The notes: a model not told the origin generated them from the sequence alone. 62,862 bases of DNA from Aplysia californica (GCF_000002075.1 NW_004797298.1:1864257-1927118); one strand, 5' to 3'. Numbered from the stretch's first letter, positions 263-11,700 are shown. A program made the numbers and translations.

Positions 263-2731
263 GTGACTGCACTTTTCAAGATTCTCTATTTCTGAGATTG
301 GACATTAATCTTGCTTATCCTCTTTAGCCCAAAGACACAAAACCAAGTACTCAATGTAATGATTCTCTCAAAGTACATGTATGTTTATGTCAATATTTCT
401 TTGTATGTGTGTTTGTTTACTTTACAACCTAATACTAGGGCGAAAAATCTCGGAGGGCCCGTGTGCAAGTTGCGCACGTTAAAGATCCCTTGGTGGTCTA
501 AAATCGATAAGAGTAGGCTTCGGCCGCCACCCGGGCAAAATTCAAAATTTCCTACCAACTGAAAATATTAGGTGTGTCCCGCGCTCATATGTGTGTGCTC
601 ATATGACCTATGCAGTTGCGAGCGCCGTAAAACACTTTACAAAAACAAAAACAAACAACCTAATACTCTTATCTGTCCCATATGAGTAGGGCCTACTCCT
701 TTGTCATGTCCTCTCTCTTCCTCATNNNNNNNNNNNNNNNNNNNNNNNNNNNNNNNNNNNNNNNNNNNNNNNNNNNNNNNNNNNNNNNNNNNNNNNNNNN
801 NNNNNNNNNNNNNNNNNNNNNNNNNNNNNNNNNNNNNNNNNNNNNNNNNNNNNNNNNNNNNNNNNNNNNNNNNNNNNNNNNNNNNNNNNNNATGTCACTG
901 AATGTATGCGTACGTGTCCTCCACAGGCTGATCCGGCACACAGAGTGTCTGCTGGAAGAGAAGGAAGAGAAGCTCTGCATCAAAGTGCTCCAGACGCTGA
1001 AAGACATGATGTCGGCCAACGAGAGCAGGTCTGAAAAGGTGAGGGGCACCCACCGCTTAGACTGTGGGCTAGTCTAGTCACTCCTGAGTTAGCACAACTG
1101 TCCTTTTCTTTGTCCCATCTTTTCCCCCATGCTTCGCAATGCGGGAATCTGTTTTACTAACGTAACTGACTAGTAAATGATACCTGATATCTCTTTGGTT
1201 GTTTTGACGTATGGGTGAATAGGTGAAAAGTTACTGTGCACTGGGAAAAAATGAACGATTAATGTTTTTGTGATGTGGGCAAAACCGTTTTGTCAGCATT
1301 TGACTTTATTTTGATCTTCCCCTGGCAGATACTTGCACTCCCTGTCTGTATGTTGAGATAAATTTTTTTATCCTGCCTAGCCAGATAGTCTTACACAAAC
1401 ACAAAGCCCACTTGTAACCAAGCTGCGATGGTCACCTAATCCTTGTCAGTTGCATTTATGAGGCTGTAAAGGATAGTGAAGCAAAGCTTAAGGAACAAGT
1501 GTAATTTGCAACTTTGTTATGTTGCAAAAAGATTGAATGGGTCAAATCAAGAGGTGCTAACTTTTGTTTCATCTGTTTTTTCTATAATGAAGCTAAATCT
1601 TTTGTCTTTTCATAGCACAGGTGTTGATAACTTGTCGCCCCTAAGACAAACAACCAATTAACGTCTCTTTTTCTTTTTGGTCATGATAGCTTTGACTGAA
1701 GATGTACTGATAACTGCAGGTGATTGATGGGTGCTCTAATCAATTCTGATTTTTTCACTTATTTTCAGTATTTATATTATTATTCTAATCAGTTGGTGGT
1801 GAAGTTTACCATTTATAATACAGACTGTCCGTACATAGCAACTCAGCAACATAATGATAGCTTCTTTCCCTAGAGAAACTATGGTCTATGCTTTTACTTT
1901 AGGTTGTGATTGTGATCCATTGTTATGTGGTGTCAGACACACTGTTTAATTATCTTGTCCTACATTGTCTCTCTATTTTAAATTATCTCTAATTTTAAGA
2001 TTACATATGTGTCATTAAGATGTATTTTTATGTAGTTTAGTGCCTAAAAATGATTTACATTTTCATTAAAGTAGAGAACACACTGTTCATCTGTTTCCCT
2101 GTTTTTGCTTAAATGAAAAGTGTCTAAAAATGTTTTCTTTCTTCCGAAGCAAATCAAAGTTTTGAACAATTCAGTGCACCTTAAAGTTTTGAATGATTCA
2201 GTGTACTTATAGTGAGAGTCTAAAATAAATAATGTGTTCTTGTCTATTACAGTGTGGTTTGTGTTGTGTGTGCGTGAGTGCGTTTATATATGTGCACATA
2301 TGTATGTGCGTGTGTGTTTGTATGTGTGTATGTCGGTGTGACTAGTTGCACTTCCAAGGTTGAAGTGCATGACAAGGCTCTATCAGAACTCTTCAGCTCC
2401 TCTCATGCGTTATGACAATGCTGTTTCTCCTTTTGTGTTTGTGTGAGTCTGCCCGCNNNNNNNNNNNNNNNNNNNNNNNNNNNNNNNNNNNNNNNNNNNN
2501 NNNNNNNNNNNNNNNNNNNNNNNNNNNNNNNNNNNNNNNNNNNNNNNNNNNNNNNNNNNNNNNNNNNNNNNNNNNNNNNNNNNNNNNNNNNNNNNNNNNN
2601 NNNNNNNNNNNNNNNNNNNNNNNNNNNNNNNNNNNNNNNNNNNNNNNNNNNNNNNNNNNNNNNNNNNNNNNNNNNNNNNNNNNNNNNNNNNNNNNNNNNN
2701 NNNNNNNNNNNNNNNNNNNNNNNNNNNNNNN

Positions 2732-2766
<35 letters not shown>

Positions 2767-5700
2767 CATTGGTACTTACACAAGCTTCAACAACCATAAG
2801 CATGCGCATCTCTCCAAGAGAAGGTGTCCAAACACATCCGCTTTGTGCAATTTTCCCTCTTGTGCTTGACCATGATGTACTACACAGAGAGGATACCATA
2901 CGTTTCTAGGGACACCTGCTTCGAGCCTTTTTTTTCTCTCCTTCAGCCTGTGTATGGTATGCTATATACACATGACCATATGTCCCCACGTGTGCTGTGT
3001 ACAGAGTTGTGACCTCTATAGAACTGGCTGCCACTCTTTGCCGATATATATTTGCCTTTATTCTATTCCCTCAAGGGTCTAACTTTGAAGAGTGATAAAG
3101 AGAAGGTATCTATGATATGTTCTGCTGAAGTGTTTCCGTCTGTCTATCCGTCTGTCCGTCCGTCCGTTTTAATCTGGCATGTACTCCCATACACGACTAT
3201 GTCACAATGCCTGTACCCTGCCACCTCATTACTCACTCGTAACTTGCTTTTGCTCTCTCATGGCTAACTGACACAAGGTGGATTTGAAAGCGCTTAGTAA
3301 GAAAGAGTTAGAAGATCATCGAAGGGTAAGACCATCTCTCCTCTCATTTTATACATGTAAAAGTGACGCATGCTGCTATCCATGTTTTGTCTCTGTTTCT
3401 CTAAATTTGGTCAATTTGATTTTTTTTGTTGCTGTCATGGCATTTTTCTCTGTACTATTTTCATGTTGTTATACTGGTCCTCAATGGATAGTTTATTACT
3501 TTCTGTTTTGATGGTTGGTTATGTGTTGTCTCCTTTGTGTTTTACACTGTTGTTCATGGATCCTTGAACATGTTGTAGTTTGGTGTAGTCAATCTGTAGA
3601 AAATTGGTTTTGGACTTGCAGGTGTCAAGTTTAGTGTGTCAGTGTCTGTCAGAGTTTAAGTATTTTTACCAAATTAATTATGGTTAAGACTCAGAACTGT
3701 TCAGTGAGGGGTTTTCTTTGTTTACAAGTTTTTGAGTGTAGGTAGCTGTCATCAGCAGCCGATTTCTGTCCAGTCTTGAGTTGACTAGATTTGTAACAGA
3801 CTGACTTTAGTAAGAAGTAGGCCAAATATTAAGAATACATTTGAAAAGGACATGTGGCTGCTTGCTATGAAAGGGATGATGCTACATTTCTATGAAGATA
3901 AAATGGTCGTGTTCTAAAAATCAAGTGTCCTGTGAGCTGAGGGTCTTCCAGTCAGCTACCCCCTGAGTTCTAAGTAGGGGTATGCGGAAGGAGAAGTAGT
4001 ATTTGTAACACACTACATCTTTATTGCTTTTGAGAAAATACTCCTTCATTAGTTTATCTCCAGCCCCAACTCCACAAAAAAAAGAATGGGCTAGAATATG
4101 CGTCTGTATATATTTGTGAATACGCATGTTTGTGTGCTTGGGATAGGGGGGAGACCGGGTAAGCAAGGGAAAATATTGGTGATTGAGAGGTGGTAGATTG
4201 TAGAACTATCATTTCACTGAATAGGTGTTGGTCTTATTGTTGGGAACTGAAGGGCCTGGTCCTTCCTTTGCATCACAACATGAGGTTTTTGGGAGCAAAA
4301 AGTCTTACAAAATTGTATTGTTTGTTTCCTTTGTCTTGAGGATGGAGTTGTCTGCTGCTGATTCAATTCTTTCATTGTTTATGCTACCTTTATTTTTATC
4401 CATTCTTTACTCATTTGTTTATTGTAACGCTTCATTCCATACTTCCACACACAGAAAAACACACACACGCACACACAGATTTACACACACACAGGCACAC
4501 ATACACATACACACGAGATCCTGCTTGCAGACATAATATCAGTCGAAACAATCAGTCATCTTCACATTCACATTCACACACTTGCACTCAAGTTCAAACA
4601 TGTAACACTACGCTGCAGTCATGAAGTTCACTTCCAGACTCCCTTTCTGACTGTAGTACATGTATTTCCCTATTATCCTGGGCTTTGCCAACTACTGGTT
4701 TCCATCTTCACCGGACTCCTTAATACTTTCCCCAGAAAAAGTGAAGTAAAGGCTACTGCTCGCTACTTACCATACTCGTCACACTTTCTTTGAATAATTG
4801 TGAAATACATCTCAGTGCCGGCTACAAAATATGAACAGGATTTTGTATTACGGTGTAATTCTTCACCTCATTTCTCTATCCTGACCCTAACTTTCACAGG
4901 GCTAGAAGGACTTGACAGTGATATGGGTCAATGAATTCAAAAAGACTTGAAAAAAGAAGACATTAGTTTGGAAAAAAGAAAGTAAAGGTACCTGTAGACT
5001 AGATATCTGCAATCTGCAAGCTTGGATTTTTAGAAAAAGTTGTATTTTTGATTGAGTCTTTTTGTGGTTTTTATTGCCCAAGTGTGGACAAGACGATTGA
5101 TTGGTATATGGGAGAGAGATGATTAAAGGAATTTATAGGATTAAGAATGCTAGTTTGCTTTCATGCATGTGTAGAACTAGTTCGATGTTGTATGAGCTTT
5201 CTCGTTATATAAGAATTTTTGTTCATGAACTAATATTGTGTAGCAATTTTAGTTTCTTGAATAATTGTTTGGTTCACTGTCTTGTTTATCGTTAAGCATT
5301 GCGCAGTATCATGATGTAACCTGAATTTTAGTCTATGTTGCTTGTCATAGCAGACCAGTAAAATGCTTCAAGCAATTCCTGACTAATAACATATTGACGC
5401 TGGTCCTGCAGTCCAGACAGGCAAAATAACTTCATATTTATTGGACTGGCTTTGCAAGGCACAGATCACTGTTATCTCAAGTGGTTTGGTGAAAAATAGA
5501 GTAGGGAGCAGTGGCAAGATAGTCTCATGTTGTGCCTTGTGGGAGGGATGCTCAGCGGGTAGATTTGTCTGTTAGATTGTATTTGAAATAGATGTTGCCT
5601 ACCATTACACAGATATATGAGAAGTCACTCTTCTTTTGCTATGTATTATTCTATTTTGTTTTCTCGAATAGCTCAAGTCATAAGTTTCCGACCTTCTATT

Positions 5701-8700
5701 CCTTGGGAATGTATAGAGAAAGAATACTTCTTGTTATATTTTCCTCTCATTTGATCTTAGCCTGTCGTCTTGTATTTGTCTTTTCTCTATTTGTATAGCT
5801 TACTCTGTATTGTAGACTGACTTTACTTTGCATACCCTCTTGTTTGTCATTTCACTCTTCCCAGCCAGCATGCAGAGTATTTTAAATCTCGTATATGTCT
5901 TAAAGGCCTAGATCTCCAGTGATCACAGTCAGTGTGTATCAGTACTCACTATAATTTGAATTTCCCAGCTTTTTTTTATTACCTACTGTCTTACTGGAGA
6001 AGGGGTTATTTTTGGTGTATGAGTGGATATGTGAGTTTTTGTTTTGTTTGTTTTTAGGGGGGAGGAGTGTTGGCGGTAATGTTTTTGTTGAGGAACCACT
6101 TTTGCTGCCGATGATAGGTGGCTCTACCTCAAAACCTCTGCTGTTTGCAAGATCAAGGATGCTATCTGCCTTTAAGATTTCAAGAATTTGACCTATCCGC
6201 TTCCTAAATTTTTGGAGGGATGAAATTTGATTTCTTTGCCCTCTTTTATTGTTGTAGTAATCTGTGATTGTGCAGATACTGGTTTCTTGAGGTTTGTCCT
6301 CCTCCTAGTTTTGAGAAGCCTTGTCTGTTTTTGGGGGTTTTTTCTAGTTCGTAATTGGATGTAATTTCTGTTGTTTGGAGAAATTGTTATTCCATGTTTT
6401 ATTTTTGAACTACTTTTTTCTGCTGTTGTTACCAATTTTTTTATATTCTGTCACTGCTATAGACTGTGAGATTGTTATGGGCTTGTGCAGTAGCAGGCCT
6501 TCTGACTGCTCGTTGATGAATTGTTTAGGAGTGGATATTGGGTTGTTTTGTGTGCATAGTCTAGATCAAGTCAGCAGTGTCTGCCACATCTACACAGAGA
6601 GTGGGTAGTTGGGGGGTTGTCTGGTGTGGTTTGCTCCTTCTTTTCTATCAAACATCTATCGTTCTTTTCTCTCCTCCTTTTTTGTTGTTGTTACTCTCTT
6701 GTAACACCTCTAATAGTTAGCTCTTATACGGCCTATTGTGTTGCAAAATTCTTACTAAAACTAAACTAAAATCTGCACAGAGGTCATTTTGTCCGCATTT
6801 CCAGGTGCTAATTTGTGCTACCACAACGCTACTTGGGACTTATTACGACTTTGGACACACGTTGTCTCATGGGCTCACTTTCTTTACTCCTTTGCTTTAC
6901 TCTTCTACTTACCGTACACACACTTCAGTGTGCAGTGATGTAAATCTAGCAATCATCCCTGGGGAGTTCAGGTTCACAGGTCTTATAGGCTCAGGAGGGC
7001 CAGGACGCAAACTTTACTTTTTTCTTCCGCTTGTACCGGGGGGGGGGGGTCGCAGGGAGACGCAAGCGTCTGTCTGCAGCAAGGCGAGTGGCTTGTAGGA
7101 GGGACATCCCATGAGCTCTCACAGATTCACTCGATCGCCCCCCTGGTCTTCTTCTGGCTCTCCATCCAGAATATTTTATGTTGTATGCTCTCAGAGCTGG
7201 ATGGTTTGAGGGCATCCGCGTGAGGTGTCCGAACAGGACGCAAAGGATTGAAATAAAAGGCTTACAAGGACTTGTTGGTCATTTTAGTTTCATAAGTGTC
7301 ATTTGTAGTTATGGAGATAATTTGGAATTGTAGAACATTTTAAATTATGCTTATAAACATTTGGTTTTTTTCAAGCATTCTGTATAGACTAGTGCTGTTG
7401 TAATACTAATGTTTTTTTAATACAGTATTATTATGCAAGGCTTTTCATAGTAGAATTAGTTGCCTCTTGCTTTACATTAGAATTACCCATGCATGTTTGG
7501 GTATGACTACTACTGACCCTCATAGCTCCCTGTAGATGTTGTTTTAGTATTTTAATGCTTGATAGAGTAGGGTTTGTATTATTTTGTTTACTTACAAGAC
7601 TAAAAGAAAATACCAGAGGTTCGTGAGGATTTGAATTATGAATGGGTGATGATTGCGGAAGGTTAGAGCGTGTCACTGGTAGGCCATACTTTCCCCCTCT
7701 TGTTTCTTTCTGTCTGTCTGACTTTTTCCCTGCACCAAATGACCATTATTGTGTTGATGTGCTTCTCTGTACTCACACAAAACAGACCACTGATGGTAGT
7801 GTTAATCCTAAGCATGTGTAGACGGTTTCAGTAGCTTTCTGGAGAAAACTGATGGTATGATATATAAATGTTGCCTTCATACAAAACACTGTGATGATTT
7901 GAAACTTGTCATGTGGAGTATCGGGCATTAAGCTTTCCAGTTTTTTCTTGTGGCTTTTTGTAGGATATGGAGGGTTATGTTTATAGAATATAATTATGTT
8001 TGGCTCTCAGCTCTGTCTTTTTCTCTGTGCGTGTGGTGTCTGTAAGAGTGTTGACATGGTGTTTGTAGTTAGTTTTTATGCTTGTAGTGTATTGTTCTTC
8101 AATAACAGTCTTCTTAAGGTCTGCTCATGATCTGGTTTATGTGCTTTTGCACTTAACCATCATTTCATGCTGGACGACACTGTATCTAAGGATAAATTTC
8201 AGTATAAGGCTCTCGTGAATTGTTTTAGGACTTTTTAATTCATAGCTCTCACCCAGTTGGCTCAGTCCCATCAGAGGATGCTTAAATTCAAGGTCTGACC
8301 TCTTGCATAACAGTATTTTGTGAGGAATATTATATTTGTGACACAAATTACAGACTTTTCTGTTTCCCTGAGATCTTTTGCGGGAGAGAAAAAGTCTAGA
8401 TAAATGACATGAAATGATTAGAAAATGAAATTTTGTTTGTCTGCTGTGTCAGGGTGCATGTGTTTGTAGATGTGCTTATATGTGGGAGTGAGTGTGAATG
8501 TGTGTCTGCATGTTTGTCTATGCTTTTTACTTCTGTGAAAAATGTTTAAAAATGTTTACTAATTTTTTTGTGCTCGTACCAGACAGAAATTCAAGAGTTT
8601 AACATCGGCCATCTGTACATAATATGCTGTTGACCTCCTTAATAGTGTTTACTATGGTTATATAGCAAAATCATATCTGTGAGTGCCAGTTATTTCGGTG

Positions 8701-11700
8701 TTCGTTCACTGTGTACATCTTGTCTCGATAGTTTGCATTTATTTTGGCACTGTGCCCTTTAATGATTTGTCCCTGTTATCATTTGTTCATTGTCTCTTTG
8801 TAGGTCATGAAATTCTTAAAAGTAAAAATTTTTTATAAAAGATTTATGTCTTTAAGCCATTCTCTCCTTATCAACATCATCTTTCAGTAATATGTTAGCA
8901 AAAAGCTGTGAGTGTTGTTTGACTTGAATATTCGTTCGATGTGTCTTGTCAGGGGAACTTTTGGCTTGTGGGCGATCTGGTGAGGTCGGCTCGTTTTTTT
9001 TCATCTTTTCAATGTTGCCATTATTTTGGTTGCTAAAGAATATTGTGCTGCTGACTGTCGTAAATTGCGTCTCAATTTGTTCAGACGGTTTTTAGTAGGG
9101 TACCTCCGAAAATCTTTTTTTGTTTCCTATACCTCTGTTGTTTCTATCAAGCCATTTTTTCGACTTTTTACAGAACTAAATTATATGTTACAGTTTTGGT
9201 ATACATCTTTTTTTCCTCCTGAGACAGTTGTCTTCTATGGATGGTTGGCTGGTGCTCTGGTGTTGTTTGCTCCTTCTTTCCTACCAATGTCTATCGTCCT
9301 TAGTAACGCTCTTGTAACACTTTTAACCCTCTCCTTACGTCATGGTTTTCTATTGTATCCATACGACGTGGGGACCTCTGTGCCACCACTTTCAAAGAGG
9401 AAATTTACTCGTTAATCCGATCCGTACTCTTTGCATAGCAGTCTGTCAAAATGATTTTTTGAGAAACATAGAATATTTCAAAGAGATCTTCGTACTTGAA
9501 GTATTCTAAAATGTGAAGAATACAACCGGGGGGGGGGGGGTACAAAATGACCCCAGGGCGTACGGATAGGTTTAATCTTTGGCATTTTTAGGACCTTATT
9601 GTAACTATATGTGTTACAAGTGCCATAAGATTCTTACTATAACTAAAATGCCTGCCTGATGAAAGGGGCCATTGCCGAACTGGCTCACCGTGAACTCCAA
9701 CACTCACCAAGGTCTGTGTATGTACAGTGTGTTTTCTGTGGTCTCCCCTCAGTGCGAGGCGCTACGTCAGAGCCTCCTGATGCGCTACTACGACCGCTCA
9801 CAGCCACGCAGCCGGCGAGAGAGCCAGTCCAGTGGACCATCCAGCGGGCCAGGCTCCACCATGTTGAGTCAAGCTAACAATCTGTCCTTGCATGATGTAC
9901 AGGTGAGTGCTCACTCTTTGTAAGTGTTTGGAAGGGGCTGTGGTCCTTTGGTACTTCCCCAAGATCTTACTACTTTACTTCCTTCTTTTATTTCTGACTG
10001 TCTATCTGTTGGTTTTGCTCTTTTCCAGCCCTATATGATGGTTATTTTGATTCTAATGAGAAATGTGCACTACATACCATGCAGTACTATCGTGACCACA
10101 AAAACCCCCCACCTGAAAGTACCTTTGTGTGATGTTTCTAGATGTTTATTCCCTCCATTACAGTAGGCACACCTGTAAAGTGCCCATAAACAACTGTTGG
10201 GTGATTGGTGTCTTTATCTTTGAACCTACTGTGCCAGAGCCACCTTTTTGTACAAAATCTTTTTAAAAAGATCAGTGTATGTCCTTGTACATTCACTGCA
10301 TGTGTATTTATGTGGGGTTTTTTTCTAATCCTATGTCCAGTGTTTCCTGGATGACAAGGGTGCCTCCAACCTGGTGATAGATCTCATCATCAAAAATACT
10401 AGTAATAAAGTCTTCCTAGAGACTGTTGAGCTGGGCATTGCACTGCTGGAGGGAGGCAACAGCAAGATACAGGTGAGTGTCACTTGTACGTTTTCCTTAC
10501 TTGGCGTCAAGCAGGAGTGAGGAGATTAAGATGTGAAAGGTGTTTTATAGTGGTATGTGTCAAAGTCTTACTGTTTGCTTGAGTTGATTTTTGTTGGCCT
10601 GCCACCTCTATCTGCCATTACCTCAATGCCTATGGATTGGAGTTGGGAAGACACCCATTATATACAAGCATGGATGCAAACTTTCTAATGGTGGATTCTC
10701 TCTCAAACAGCCATGCCCTGGTGTACACATGTATTCTTTTTTTAGTTTATAATCTCTTCTCTTTGTTTTTCTCTCGCTCTGCAACAGCTTGGCCAAATGC
10801 CCAGACTTGAAAATGAACTATTTGTATTTGAAAAAGTCGGCCATCATGTTATGACTTGTCAGCATCTTCCTGGTGAAAAGTTCAGGATACAGAGCCAAAA
10901 GAAACATCAGAGGCAACTGCAAGTTTTAAGACAGCTGAATGACCCATGTTTGTGTTTGGGTGAACAGAATTATTGGCAAGTTATGCCTTGACTTCTACTC
11001 TGTTTCTCAGAAATCTATATACCAGCGGCTGACCACAGACAAGGACGCTGACATCTTCTTCAAGGTGTTCCTTGACCGCATGCGTGACGCACAGGCTGAG
11101 ATACGCAACACGGTGACAGTGAACACATCAGACACAGAGCACAGGCAGCACCGTGAGGAAGACAAGAAAAAGAAAGGTGAAGTTTACTACTGAGATTATT
11201 TAAAAGTTTTGTCACTTTTCTCGAATTTAGGAAATTTGATGTTAGAGAATTGTATTAATTATGTAGCCTCTGAACTGAAGTTTTATGAATGTTGTGTCAA
11301 AATATTTTTGAGGAAACAGTCAAAGCTTGAGGTGAAATCTGCCTCTGGCTTCTTGCCTCATGTCTGGCTAAATGTTTTGTCTCTGTGTCTCGCTACCTTT
11401 TTCAGAGTTGTTTTTAAAAAATGTGCATATAGTGACATTATGGGAGAGCATACGTTAAGTGTTTATCTGTTATTCATAGATGTAAAGTAAGGTCATTTGT
11501 CTTCTAGTATTGTTGTGAATGCATACAAATGGTGAGTCGAAGACTTGCCTGCTTTTGAATTTTTACTCTTTTGTCTAATTAACGGACAGAGTTGGTCACT
11601 CAATCTCAGCCACACATTCTGTTTCCCCTTCCCTCCAACCCAATCTCATTCATGCACATCATATTACACTTGGCTGAAATAAATGTTTTGTGCTGGAGCA

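Follow-up and report, generated by a model that had tools for sequence, protein, structure and literature searches.

The inositol trisphosphate receptor (ITPR) gene of Aplysia californica contains a 48-nt cassette exon at positions 3278 to 3325 of the window, the 62,862-nucleotide stretch of DNA analyzed here. The exon is real, far beyond what chance would supply. As judged by sequence comparison, it is the counterpart of the SIIC exon of vertebrate ITPR1, which would date this alternative splicing to the first bilaterians. A sequence-only reading of the window had proposed that SIIC has a counterpart here and that SII splicing is older than the protostome/deuterostome split, and both proposals are borne out by a common intron, phase and length, by a graded series of inserts and by a sequence profile. 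Taken as a whole, the observations are very probably best explained by a genuine optional exon of Aplysia ITPR, orthologous to SIIC, that would lengthen a helix and tune a phospho-loop.

The gene, its host intron and the two cassettes

Aplysia ITPR is represented in the window by its 3′ half. From 111 to 39903 on the + strand, successive exons match P0174 at ~100% identity, a protein that we take, from its source's naming, to be 'inositol trisphosphate receptor [Aplysia californica]'; this mapping fixes the gene, its strand and its frame. A conserved ITPR exon of the window has one match site in the 927-Mb, 4,332-contig genome, indicating a single-copy, invertebrate-type IP3-receptor gene. P0174 also contains two small exons, 14218-14271 (18 residues) and 15682-15732 (17 residues), in the 12-17 kb interval. 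At 990-1004, within the exon at 927-1038, the protein has Asp-Ala-Glu and the genome Thr-Leu-Lys. Exactly the Asp-Ala-Glu of P0174 would follow from the insertion of one base and the deletion of another 11 nt away in the cDNA, so that this mismatch resembles a compensated frameshift error made in the cDNA deposit more than a polymorphism. The features used below are the following.

927..1038, + strand: constitutive ITPR exon upstream of the SII-equivalent junction; P0174 residues 1651-1688, ending on a full codon with ..SRSEK
1039..9752, + strand: intron of 8,714 nt with both cassette exons inside; includes a 275-nt N gap at 2457-2731
3076..3105, + strand: 30-nt cassette exon, phase 0/0, A-type and lineage-restricted; pyrimidine tract, AG and GTATCT donor
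3245..3277, + strand: 3′ splice region of the 48-nt exon; TGC at 3245 and 3251, pyrimidine run, branch-point-like CTAAC at 3264-3268, purine-rich up to the AG
3278..3325, + strand: 48-nt cassette exon, phase 0/0, predicted SIIC counterpart; stop-free, 16 residues, AG at 3276-3277 before it and GT after it
3326..3331, + strand: 5′ splice site GTAAGA of the 48-nt exon
3368..3372, + strand: GCATG, 43 nt downstream of the 48-nt exon, preceded by C (not T)
9753..9902, + strand: constitutive downstream exon, beginning CEALRQ on a full codon (P0174 mapping); aligned to ITPR1 chains 5gug/3jav at 1733-1765
9813-9824, + strand: RRES kinase-site motif within the exon at 9753..9902

For the 48-nt exon, the coordinates, splice dinucleotides, frame, peptide and intron size given by the sequence-only reading were all confirmed by re-reading the sequence, and the GCATG and the upstream TGC motifs are present as it had claimed. 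Openness and splice dinucleotides alone say little about such a block, because the host intron holds 592 open phase-0 blocks of 9-150 nt between AG and GT, 17 of which are 48 nt long. A chance open block was rejected on two other grounds: the hexapeptide that ends the exon occurs once in six frames of the whole 62.9-kb window, and 3278-3325 is the top of ~53,700 windows scored against nemertean, octopus, brachiopod, spider, hemichordate and starfish inserts (z 5.6 to 10.5). An exon of an overlapping opposite-strand gene was also rejected, given that conservation stops at the 48 nt and their splice sites. The exon with its reading frame continued into the intron is too short a query for the PDB and matched nothing there.

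To set the Aplysia intron beside its orthologs, we used a sacoglossan-like contig (L002), Biomphalaria (L003) and Lymnaea (L004). Besides the flanking exons, of which the upstream one at 927..1038 has 87% identity with L002 3729-3845, blastn of the Aplysia and L002 introns gave a sole conserved island, 3276-3330, at 85%. The 48-nt exon, with its AG and GTAAG, is intact in all four heterobranch genomes. Pairwise, the four copies have pS of 0.39-0.83, pN of 0.03-0.13 and pN/pS of about 0.1-0.25, with 12-15 of the 16 residues the same, and the 48-nt flanks on each side of the exon show random identity. On these coding comparisons, the exon is under strong purifying selection in the four genomes. 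Its acceptor has a purine-rich final dozen bases before the AG and is a weak 3′ splice site. The corresponding region is similar in Lymnaea (pyrimidine run ending CTCAT, CTAAC farther upstream, purine-rich last dozen bases); Biomphalaria has the CTCAT run without CTAAC, and L002 has CTAAC without the CTCAT run. In Lymnaea stagnalis, the intact 48-nt exon with AG/GTAAG is at 29988-30035 of L004 and the deposited protein P0299 is without it, an omission that probably reflects incomplete annotation.

The 30-nt cassette at 3076-3105 translates to P0174:1689-1698 exactly and is the only insert of that cDNA-derived protein. Orthologs occur in Plakobranchus (P0407:1700-1709) and in L002, where the copy at 5219-5248, flanked by AG/GT, fell below the blastn threshold and was located by peptide scan; the Biomphalaria and Lymnaea introns gave no copy in a peptide scan. 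The two-tier order of vertebrate SIIA plus SIIC thus recurs in the Aplysia intron, and all four combinations of the Aplysia cassettes are in frame. SIIA (33- and 36-nt exons in mouse) likewise precedes the conserved cassette, and the Aplysia 30-nt cassette, like SIIA, is usable without the conserved one, as in P0174, yet the two have no sequence likeness. Four Octopus proteins (P0371, P0165, P0372 and P0374) display between them four forms: no cassette, a 15-residue upstream lineage-specific cassette, the conserved 16-residue cassette, and both in that order. The four Mya proteins (P0409, P0408, P0410 and P0411) display the same range, again with a lineage-specific cassette of 15 residues beside the conserved one of 16, so that both genera mirror vertebrate SIIA/SIIC, and amphioxus has three cassettes at the junction. 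Because the upstream cassettes differ among heterobranchs, Octopus, Mya, amphioxus and vertebrates, they probably arose independently.

Homologous inserts and the vertebrate SIIC exon

Receptors of many phyla were collected by a search with a flatworm ITPR, and isoforms by cluster look-ups; the non-Aplysia isoforms come for the most part from automatic RefSeq annotation. Exactly at the ..GEK / GEALRQ junction lies a homologous insert, 15-19 residues long (mostly 16), that forms a graded chain over nine phyla. Its carriers are gastropods of four major clades, a chiton, a bivalve, octopuses, two nemerteans, Lingula, spiders, Limulus, two hemichordates, two starfish and amphioxus. The Aplysia exon is identical at 14 of 16 residues to the inserts of the nemertean Tubulanus (P0167:1716-1731) and of the caenogastropods Babylonia (P0172:1679-1694) and Pomacea (P0420:1682-1697), and at 13 of 16 to that of Octopus (P0372:1679-1694). 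An insert-minus form was found in every species that has several isoforms, and both the insert-bearing and the skipped form are among the annotated isoforms of 15 invertebrate taxa (Physella, Biomphalaria, Babylonia, Pomacea, Haliotis, Gigantopelta, the chiton Liolophura, Mya, Octopus, Lineus, spiders, Limulus, Ptychodera, Patiria and Branchiostoma). The 16-residue inserts of other invertebrates (Physella P0178:1705-1720, Tubulanus, Octopus) are orthologous to the Aplysia exon, at the same junction, 11-14/16 identical and alternative within each species; they are database models, and the Aplysia copy is missing from the sole Aplysia protein retrieved. The exon already figures in many automatic RefSeq gene models, and an open-access literature search returned no paper linking invertebrate inserts to SII or stating SII conservation outside vertebrates.

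Other sequences occupy the same junction. In beetles, the SII junction carries just a short alternative insert, 5-11 residues long (P0185:1735-1743, P0465:1749-1759, P0476), which MAFFT sets beneath the conserved half of the exon. Unrelated inserts occur there in single species each: 6 residues in Bradybaena (P0176), 13 in Babylonia (P0319), 19 in Littorina (P0187) and 10 in Branchiostoma (P0362). These extra inserts either mark the junction as a hot spot for new cassettes or are annotation errors. A neighboring-exon search of a representative library gave mostly genomic ORF fragments, P0018 being a piece of a Lingula protein.

SIIC (mouse VastDB exon MmuEX0024736) occupies the same intron, flanked by the exon that ends ..GEK and the one that starts GEALRQ, and shares with the insert its 48 nt and 16 residues, its 0/0 phase and its cassette behavior. 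With the Aplysia exon it also shares an acidic-Asp-His-basic-Arg ending; in Aplysia and mouse ITPR1 alike, the serine of RRES follows the junction by 24 residues. Mouse Itpr1 has exons of 33, 36 and 48 nt, all of class 'Neural', and the 48-nt exon has an alternative acceptor 3 nt upstream (PMC8797185 Table S2). The SII insert of guinea pig ITPR1 has 39 or 40 residues (P0239:1678-1717), and fish ITPR1 isoforms carry the final 16 residues on their own (P0196:1706-1721); checked against vertebrate ITPR1 isoforms, the mammalian SII sequence that the earlier reading had given is correct. The differences lie elsewhere. The N-terminal halves are unrelated, vertebrate SIIC being proline- and glutamine-rich and the lophotrochozoan insert having a Val-Asp-aliphatic-Lys start, and the Aplysia exon is without the vertebrate 'B' glutamine acceptor 3 nt upstream. 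Vertebrate SII-minus ITPR1 has a glycine-rich GYGEKG junction, which is an extra ATP site; skipping in Aplysia does not create one, because SRSEK is followed there by C.

The position, length and phase invoked by the sequence-only reading are indeed shared, but its appeal to the common ending needed another footing. Compared directly, the Aplysia exon and mammalian SIIC agree at 5/16 residues, and 26 other windows of the Aplysia sequence score equally, so that the argument from the shared ending alone is insufficient. It is a profile that links the two endings. In a MAFFT alignment, the C-terminal half of the insert and SIIC fall in the same columns. A position-weight profile was then built from protostome inserts only, using the last 12 residues and one vote per phylum, and among ~2,730 windows of whole ITPR1 proteins (guinea pig, a mormyrid fish and a thrush) its top score falls on the SIIC end, at 15-22 bits as against 8-12 for the runner-up. 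The same profile finds the insert in amphioxus, Ptychodera and Patiria, by a clear margin in each. The exon's C-terminal signature is therefore common to SIIC, whereas full-length similarity to the mammalian exon is weak.

A reading in which the exon is real and conserved among invertebrates, and its likeness to SIIC reflects convergence at a hot spot for short charged cassettes, has some material to draw on. The junction has received unrelated inserts in many lineages (15 residues in Octopus, 15 in Mya, 19 in Littorina, 13 in Babylonia, 10 and 14 in amphioxus, 10 in Aplysia/Plakobranchus and 5-11 in beetles), the Aplysia-mammal identity is low, and splicing hot spots have been argued to be common in evolution (PMC8797185). 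What convergence leaves unexplained is that the sequence grades from molluscs through chelicerates and ambulacrarians to amphioxus and fish, that the profile singles out the SIIC end within whole proteins, and that length (15-19 residues, mostly 16), phase and last-cassette position are the same; we consider it improbable. The intermediates and the profile, together with agreement in intron, phase, length and last-cassette rank, make common descent of the Aplysia exon and SIIC much likelier.

Proposed use and control of the exon in Aplysia

Skipping of the exon in Aplysia is shown by P0174, which is without the 48 nt, and we infer that the exon is also included in Aplysia mRNA. No insert-bearing Aplysia protein was present among 15 candidates from a narrow-region search of a database from which records of this genome may be missing, and a fragment search with the Physella segment gave no Aplysia transcript fragment and led to L002. 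Our RNA survey covered the region 900-4400 in three raw poly-A runs and one contig run. The three raw runs place 8-11 reads per run (<1x) on this region, barely touching the constitutive exon, with no joints or loose ends and no read connecting 1038 or 3105 with 3278, or 3325 with 9753. In run X22, on the + strand, ~33 nt near 1003-1035 and ~30 nt in the exon's bin are covered, a hint that we did not count. Separately, the intronic interval 3825-4400 has + strand reads at a depth of 1-2 from all three poly-A runs, which exceeds the ITPR exons, and at position 3881 all runs and one contig have T instead of G; this signal may come from a repeat or an intronic transcript.

Two other readings of the exon's use in Aplysia bear on these data. 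The block could be a silent relic, conserved but unspliced, with only the 30-nt cassette in use, as might be thought from the sole Aplysia protein, which has that cassette and not the 48-nt exon, from the zero junction reads (at 8-11 reads per run over 3.5 kb) and from the purine-rich bases before the AG. A relic would drift like the flanks, which show random identity, whereas its frame and both splice sites are intact and the synonymous excess includes the Aplysia copy; moreover, the weak acceptor is found also in Lymnaea and partly in Biomphalaria, whose RefSeq isoforms include the exon. We regard a relic as highly improbable. A more serious possibility, to which we give somewhat less than even weight, is that the exon is included by default in most Aplysia tissues and skipped in few, the reverse of the vertebrate pattern and without Srrm or Rbfox control. 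The majority of models include the insert in Haliotis (13/14), Gigantopelta (8/10) and Ptychodera (8/10), although counts of isoform models do not measure expression, and the protein P0183, derived from starfish oocyte cDNA, is without the insert, as is the Aplysia cDNA protein. The weak acceptor, for its part, fits an activator-dependent exon rather than one included by default, whereas the fate of the proposed regulatory motifs, which are not conserved, and the behavior of the mouse SII exons, which are not eMIC-dependent (PMC8797185 Table S2), agree with default inclusion.

The earlier reading had taken the TGC motifs and the GCATG as signs of Srrm3/4- and Rbfox-type neural regulation, and neither inference found support. 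TGC occurs 4 times per 100 nt upstream in Aplysia, 4 in L002, 0 in Biomphalaria and 3 in Lymnaea, with ~1.6 expected, so that the motif does not appear conserved and its counts are near chance, while the weak acceptor layout is shared; in addition, the mouse SII exons are not classed as eMIC-dependent, nor the mouse 48-nt exon as eMIC-sensitive (PMC8797185 Table S2). Within 300 nt downstream, where about 0.3 GCATG are expected, there is none in L002 or L004, and L003 has one at +110. Downstream GCATG is thus missing in two of three relatives, and the Aplysia motif, not being conserved, is probably a chance match.

The Aplysia exon has about an even chance of being enriched in the nervous system. 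Like it, the 27-nt eMIC-dependent neuronal microexon of Drosophila Itp-r83A (DmeEX0004837, dm6 chr3R:5531414-5531440; PMC8797185 Table S2) is a short cassette of a single invertebrate ITPR gene, and the fly exon is neuronal. Older literature cited in a review places a fly splice site at the SIII position, and that review mentions fly-human conservation of the SIII site only (PMC8301844). The fly 27-nt exon may be at the same site as the beetle inserts, an equivalence that is a lead only. Rather doubtfully, we suggest that the cassette is one of very few regulated alternative exons whose sequence is still recognizable in both molluscs and mammals since the bilaterian ancestor, and that it was already enriched in the nervous system there, with the insect insert, possibly including the fly exon, as a shrunken remnant.

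Proposed effect on the receptor and its meaning

We propose that the insert acts through the helix and the phospho-loop that follow it. An AlphaFold2 model was made with a Physella fragment as proxy (42-sequence alignment, mean pLDDT 64). In this model, no structure forms in the first half of the insert, its conserved second half is continuous with helix 146-167, which opens the next exon and is of moderate confidence (pLDDT ~62), and the RRES loop is disordered (pLDDT <50). Splicing the exon in, alone or with 3076-3105, would give the regulatory (coupling) region 16 additional, mostly charged residues, placed 24 residues before the conserved RRES kinase site. Most probably, the C-terminal half, with its conserved pattern (two basic residues, x, aliphatic, acidic, Asp, His/Gln/Ala, x, Arg), extends the first helix of the next exon by roughly two turns, as the model suggests. 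A longer helix may alter the presentation of the disordered phospho-loop, its access or its coupling to kinases or partner proteins, and channel regulation would in this way be tuned by tissue. In ITPR1, SII changes which PKA/PKG sites matter.

The purpose of ITPR1 SII splicing has been debated since 1991, mostly with reference to properties peculiar to vertebrates, among them the extra ATP site that skipping creates. The last cassette appears to be common to molluscs, nemerteans, brachiopods, chelicerates, ambulacrarians, amphioxus and vertebrates. Such sharing implies that the ATP motif of the skipped form cannot be the splice's ancestral reason, and it suggests the small conserved core beside the kinase loop as the functional part. 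As a cassette kept over this span, the exon would be one more rare case for a short list. If the more doubtful suggestion of a cassette already enriched in the ancestral nervous system is true, neuron-specific tuning of IP3-receptor phospho-regulation would be an ancestral bilaterian trait, and the conserved nine-residue core would mark an undiscovered binding or gating element. With its large identified neurons and single ITPR gene, Aplysia would be a practical system for the insert's effect on calcium release.
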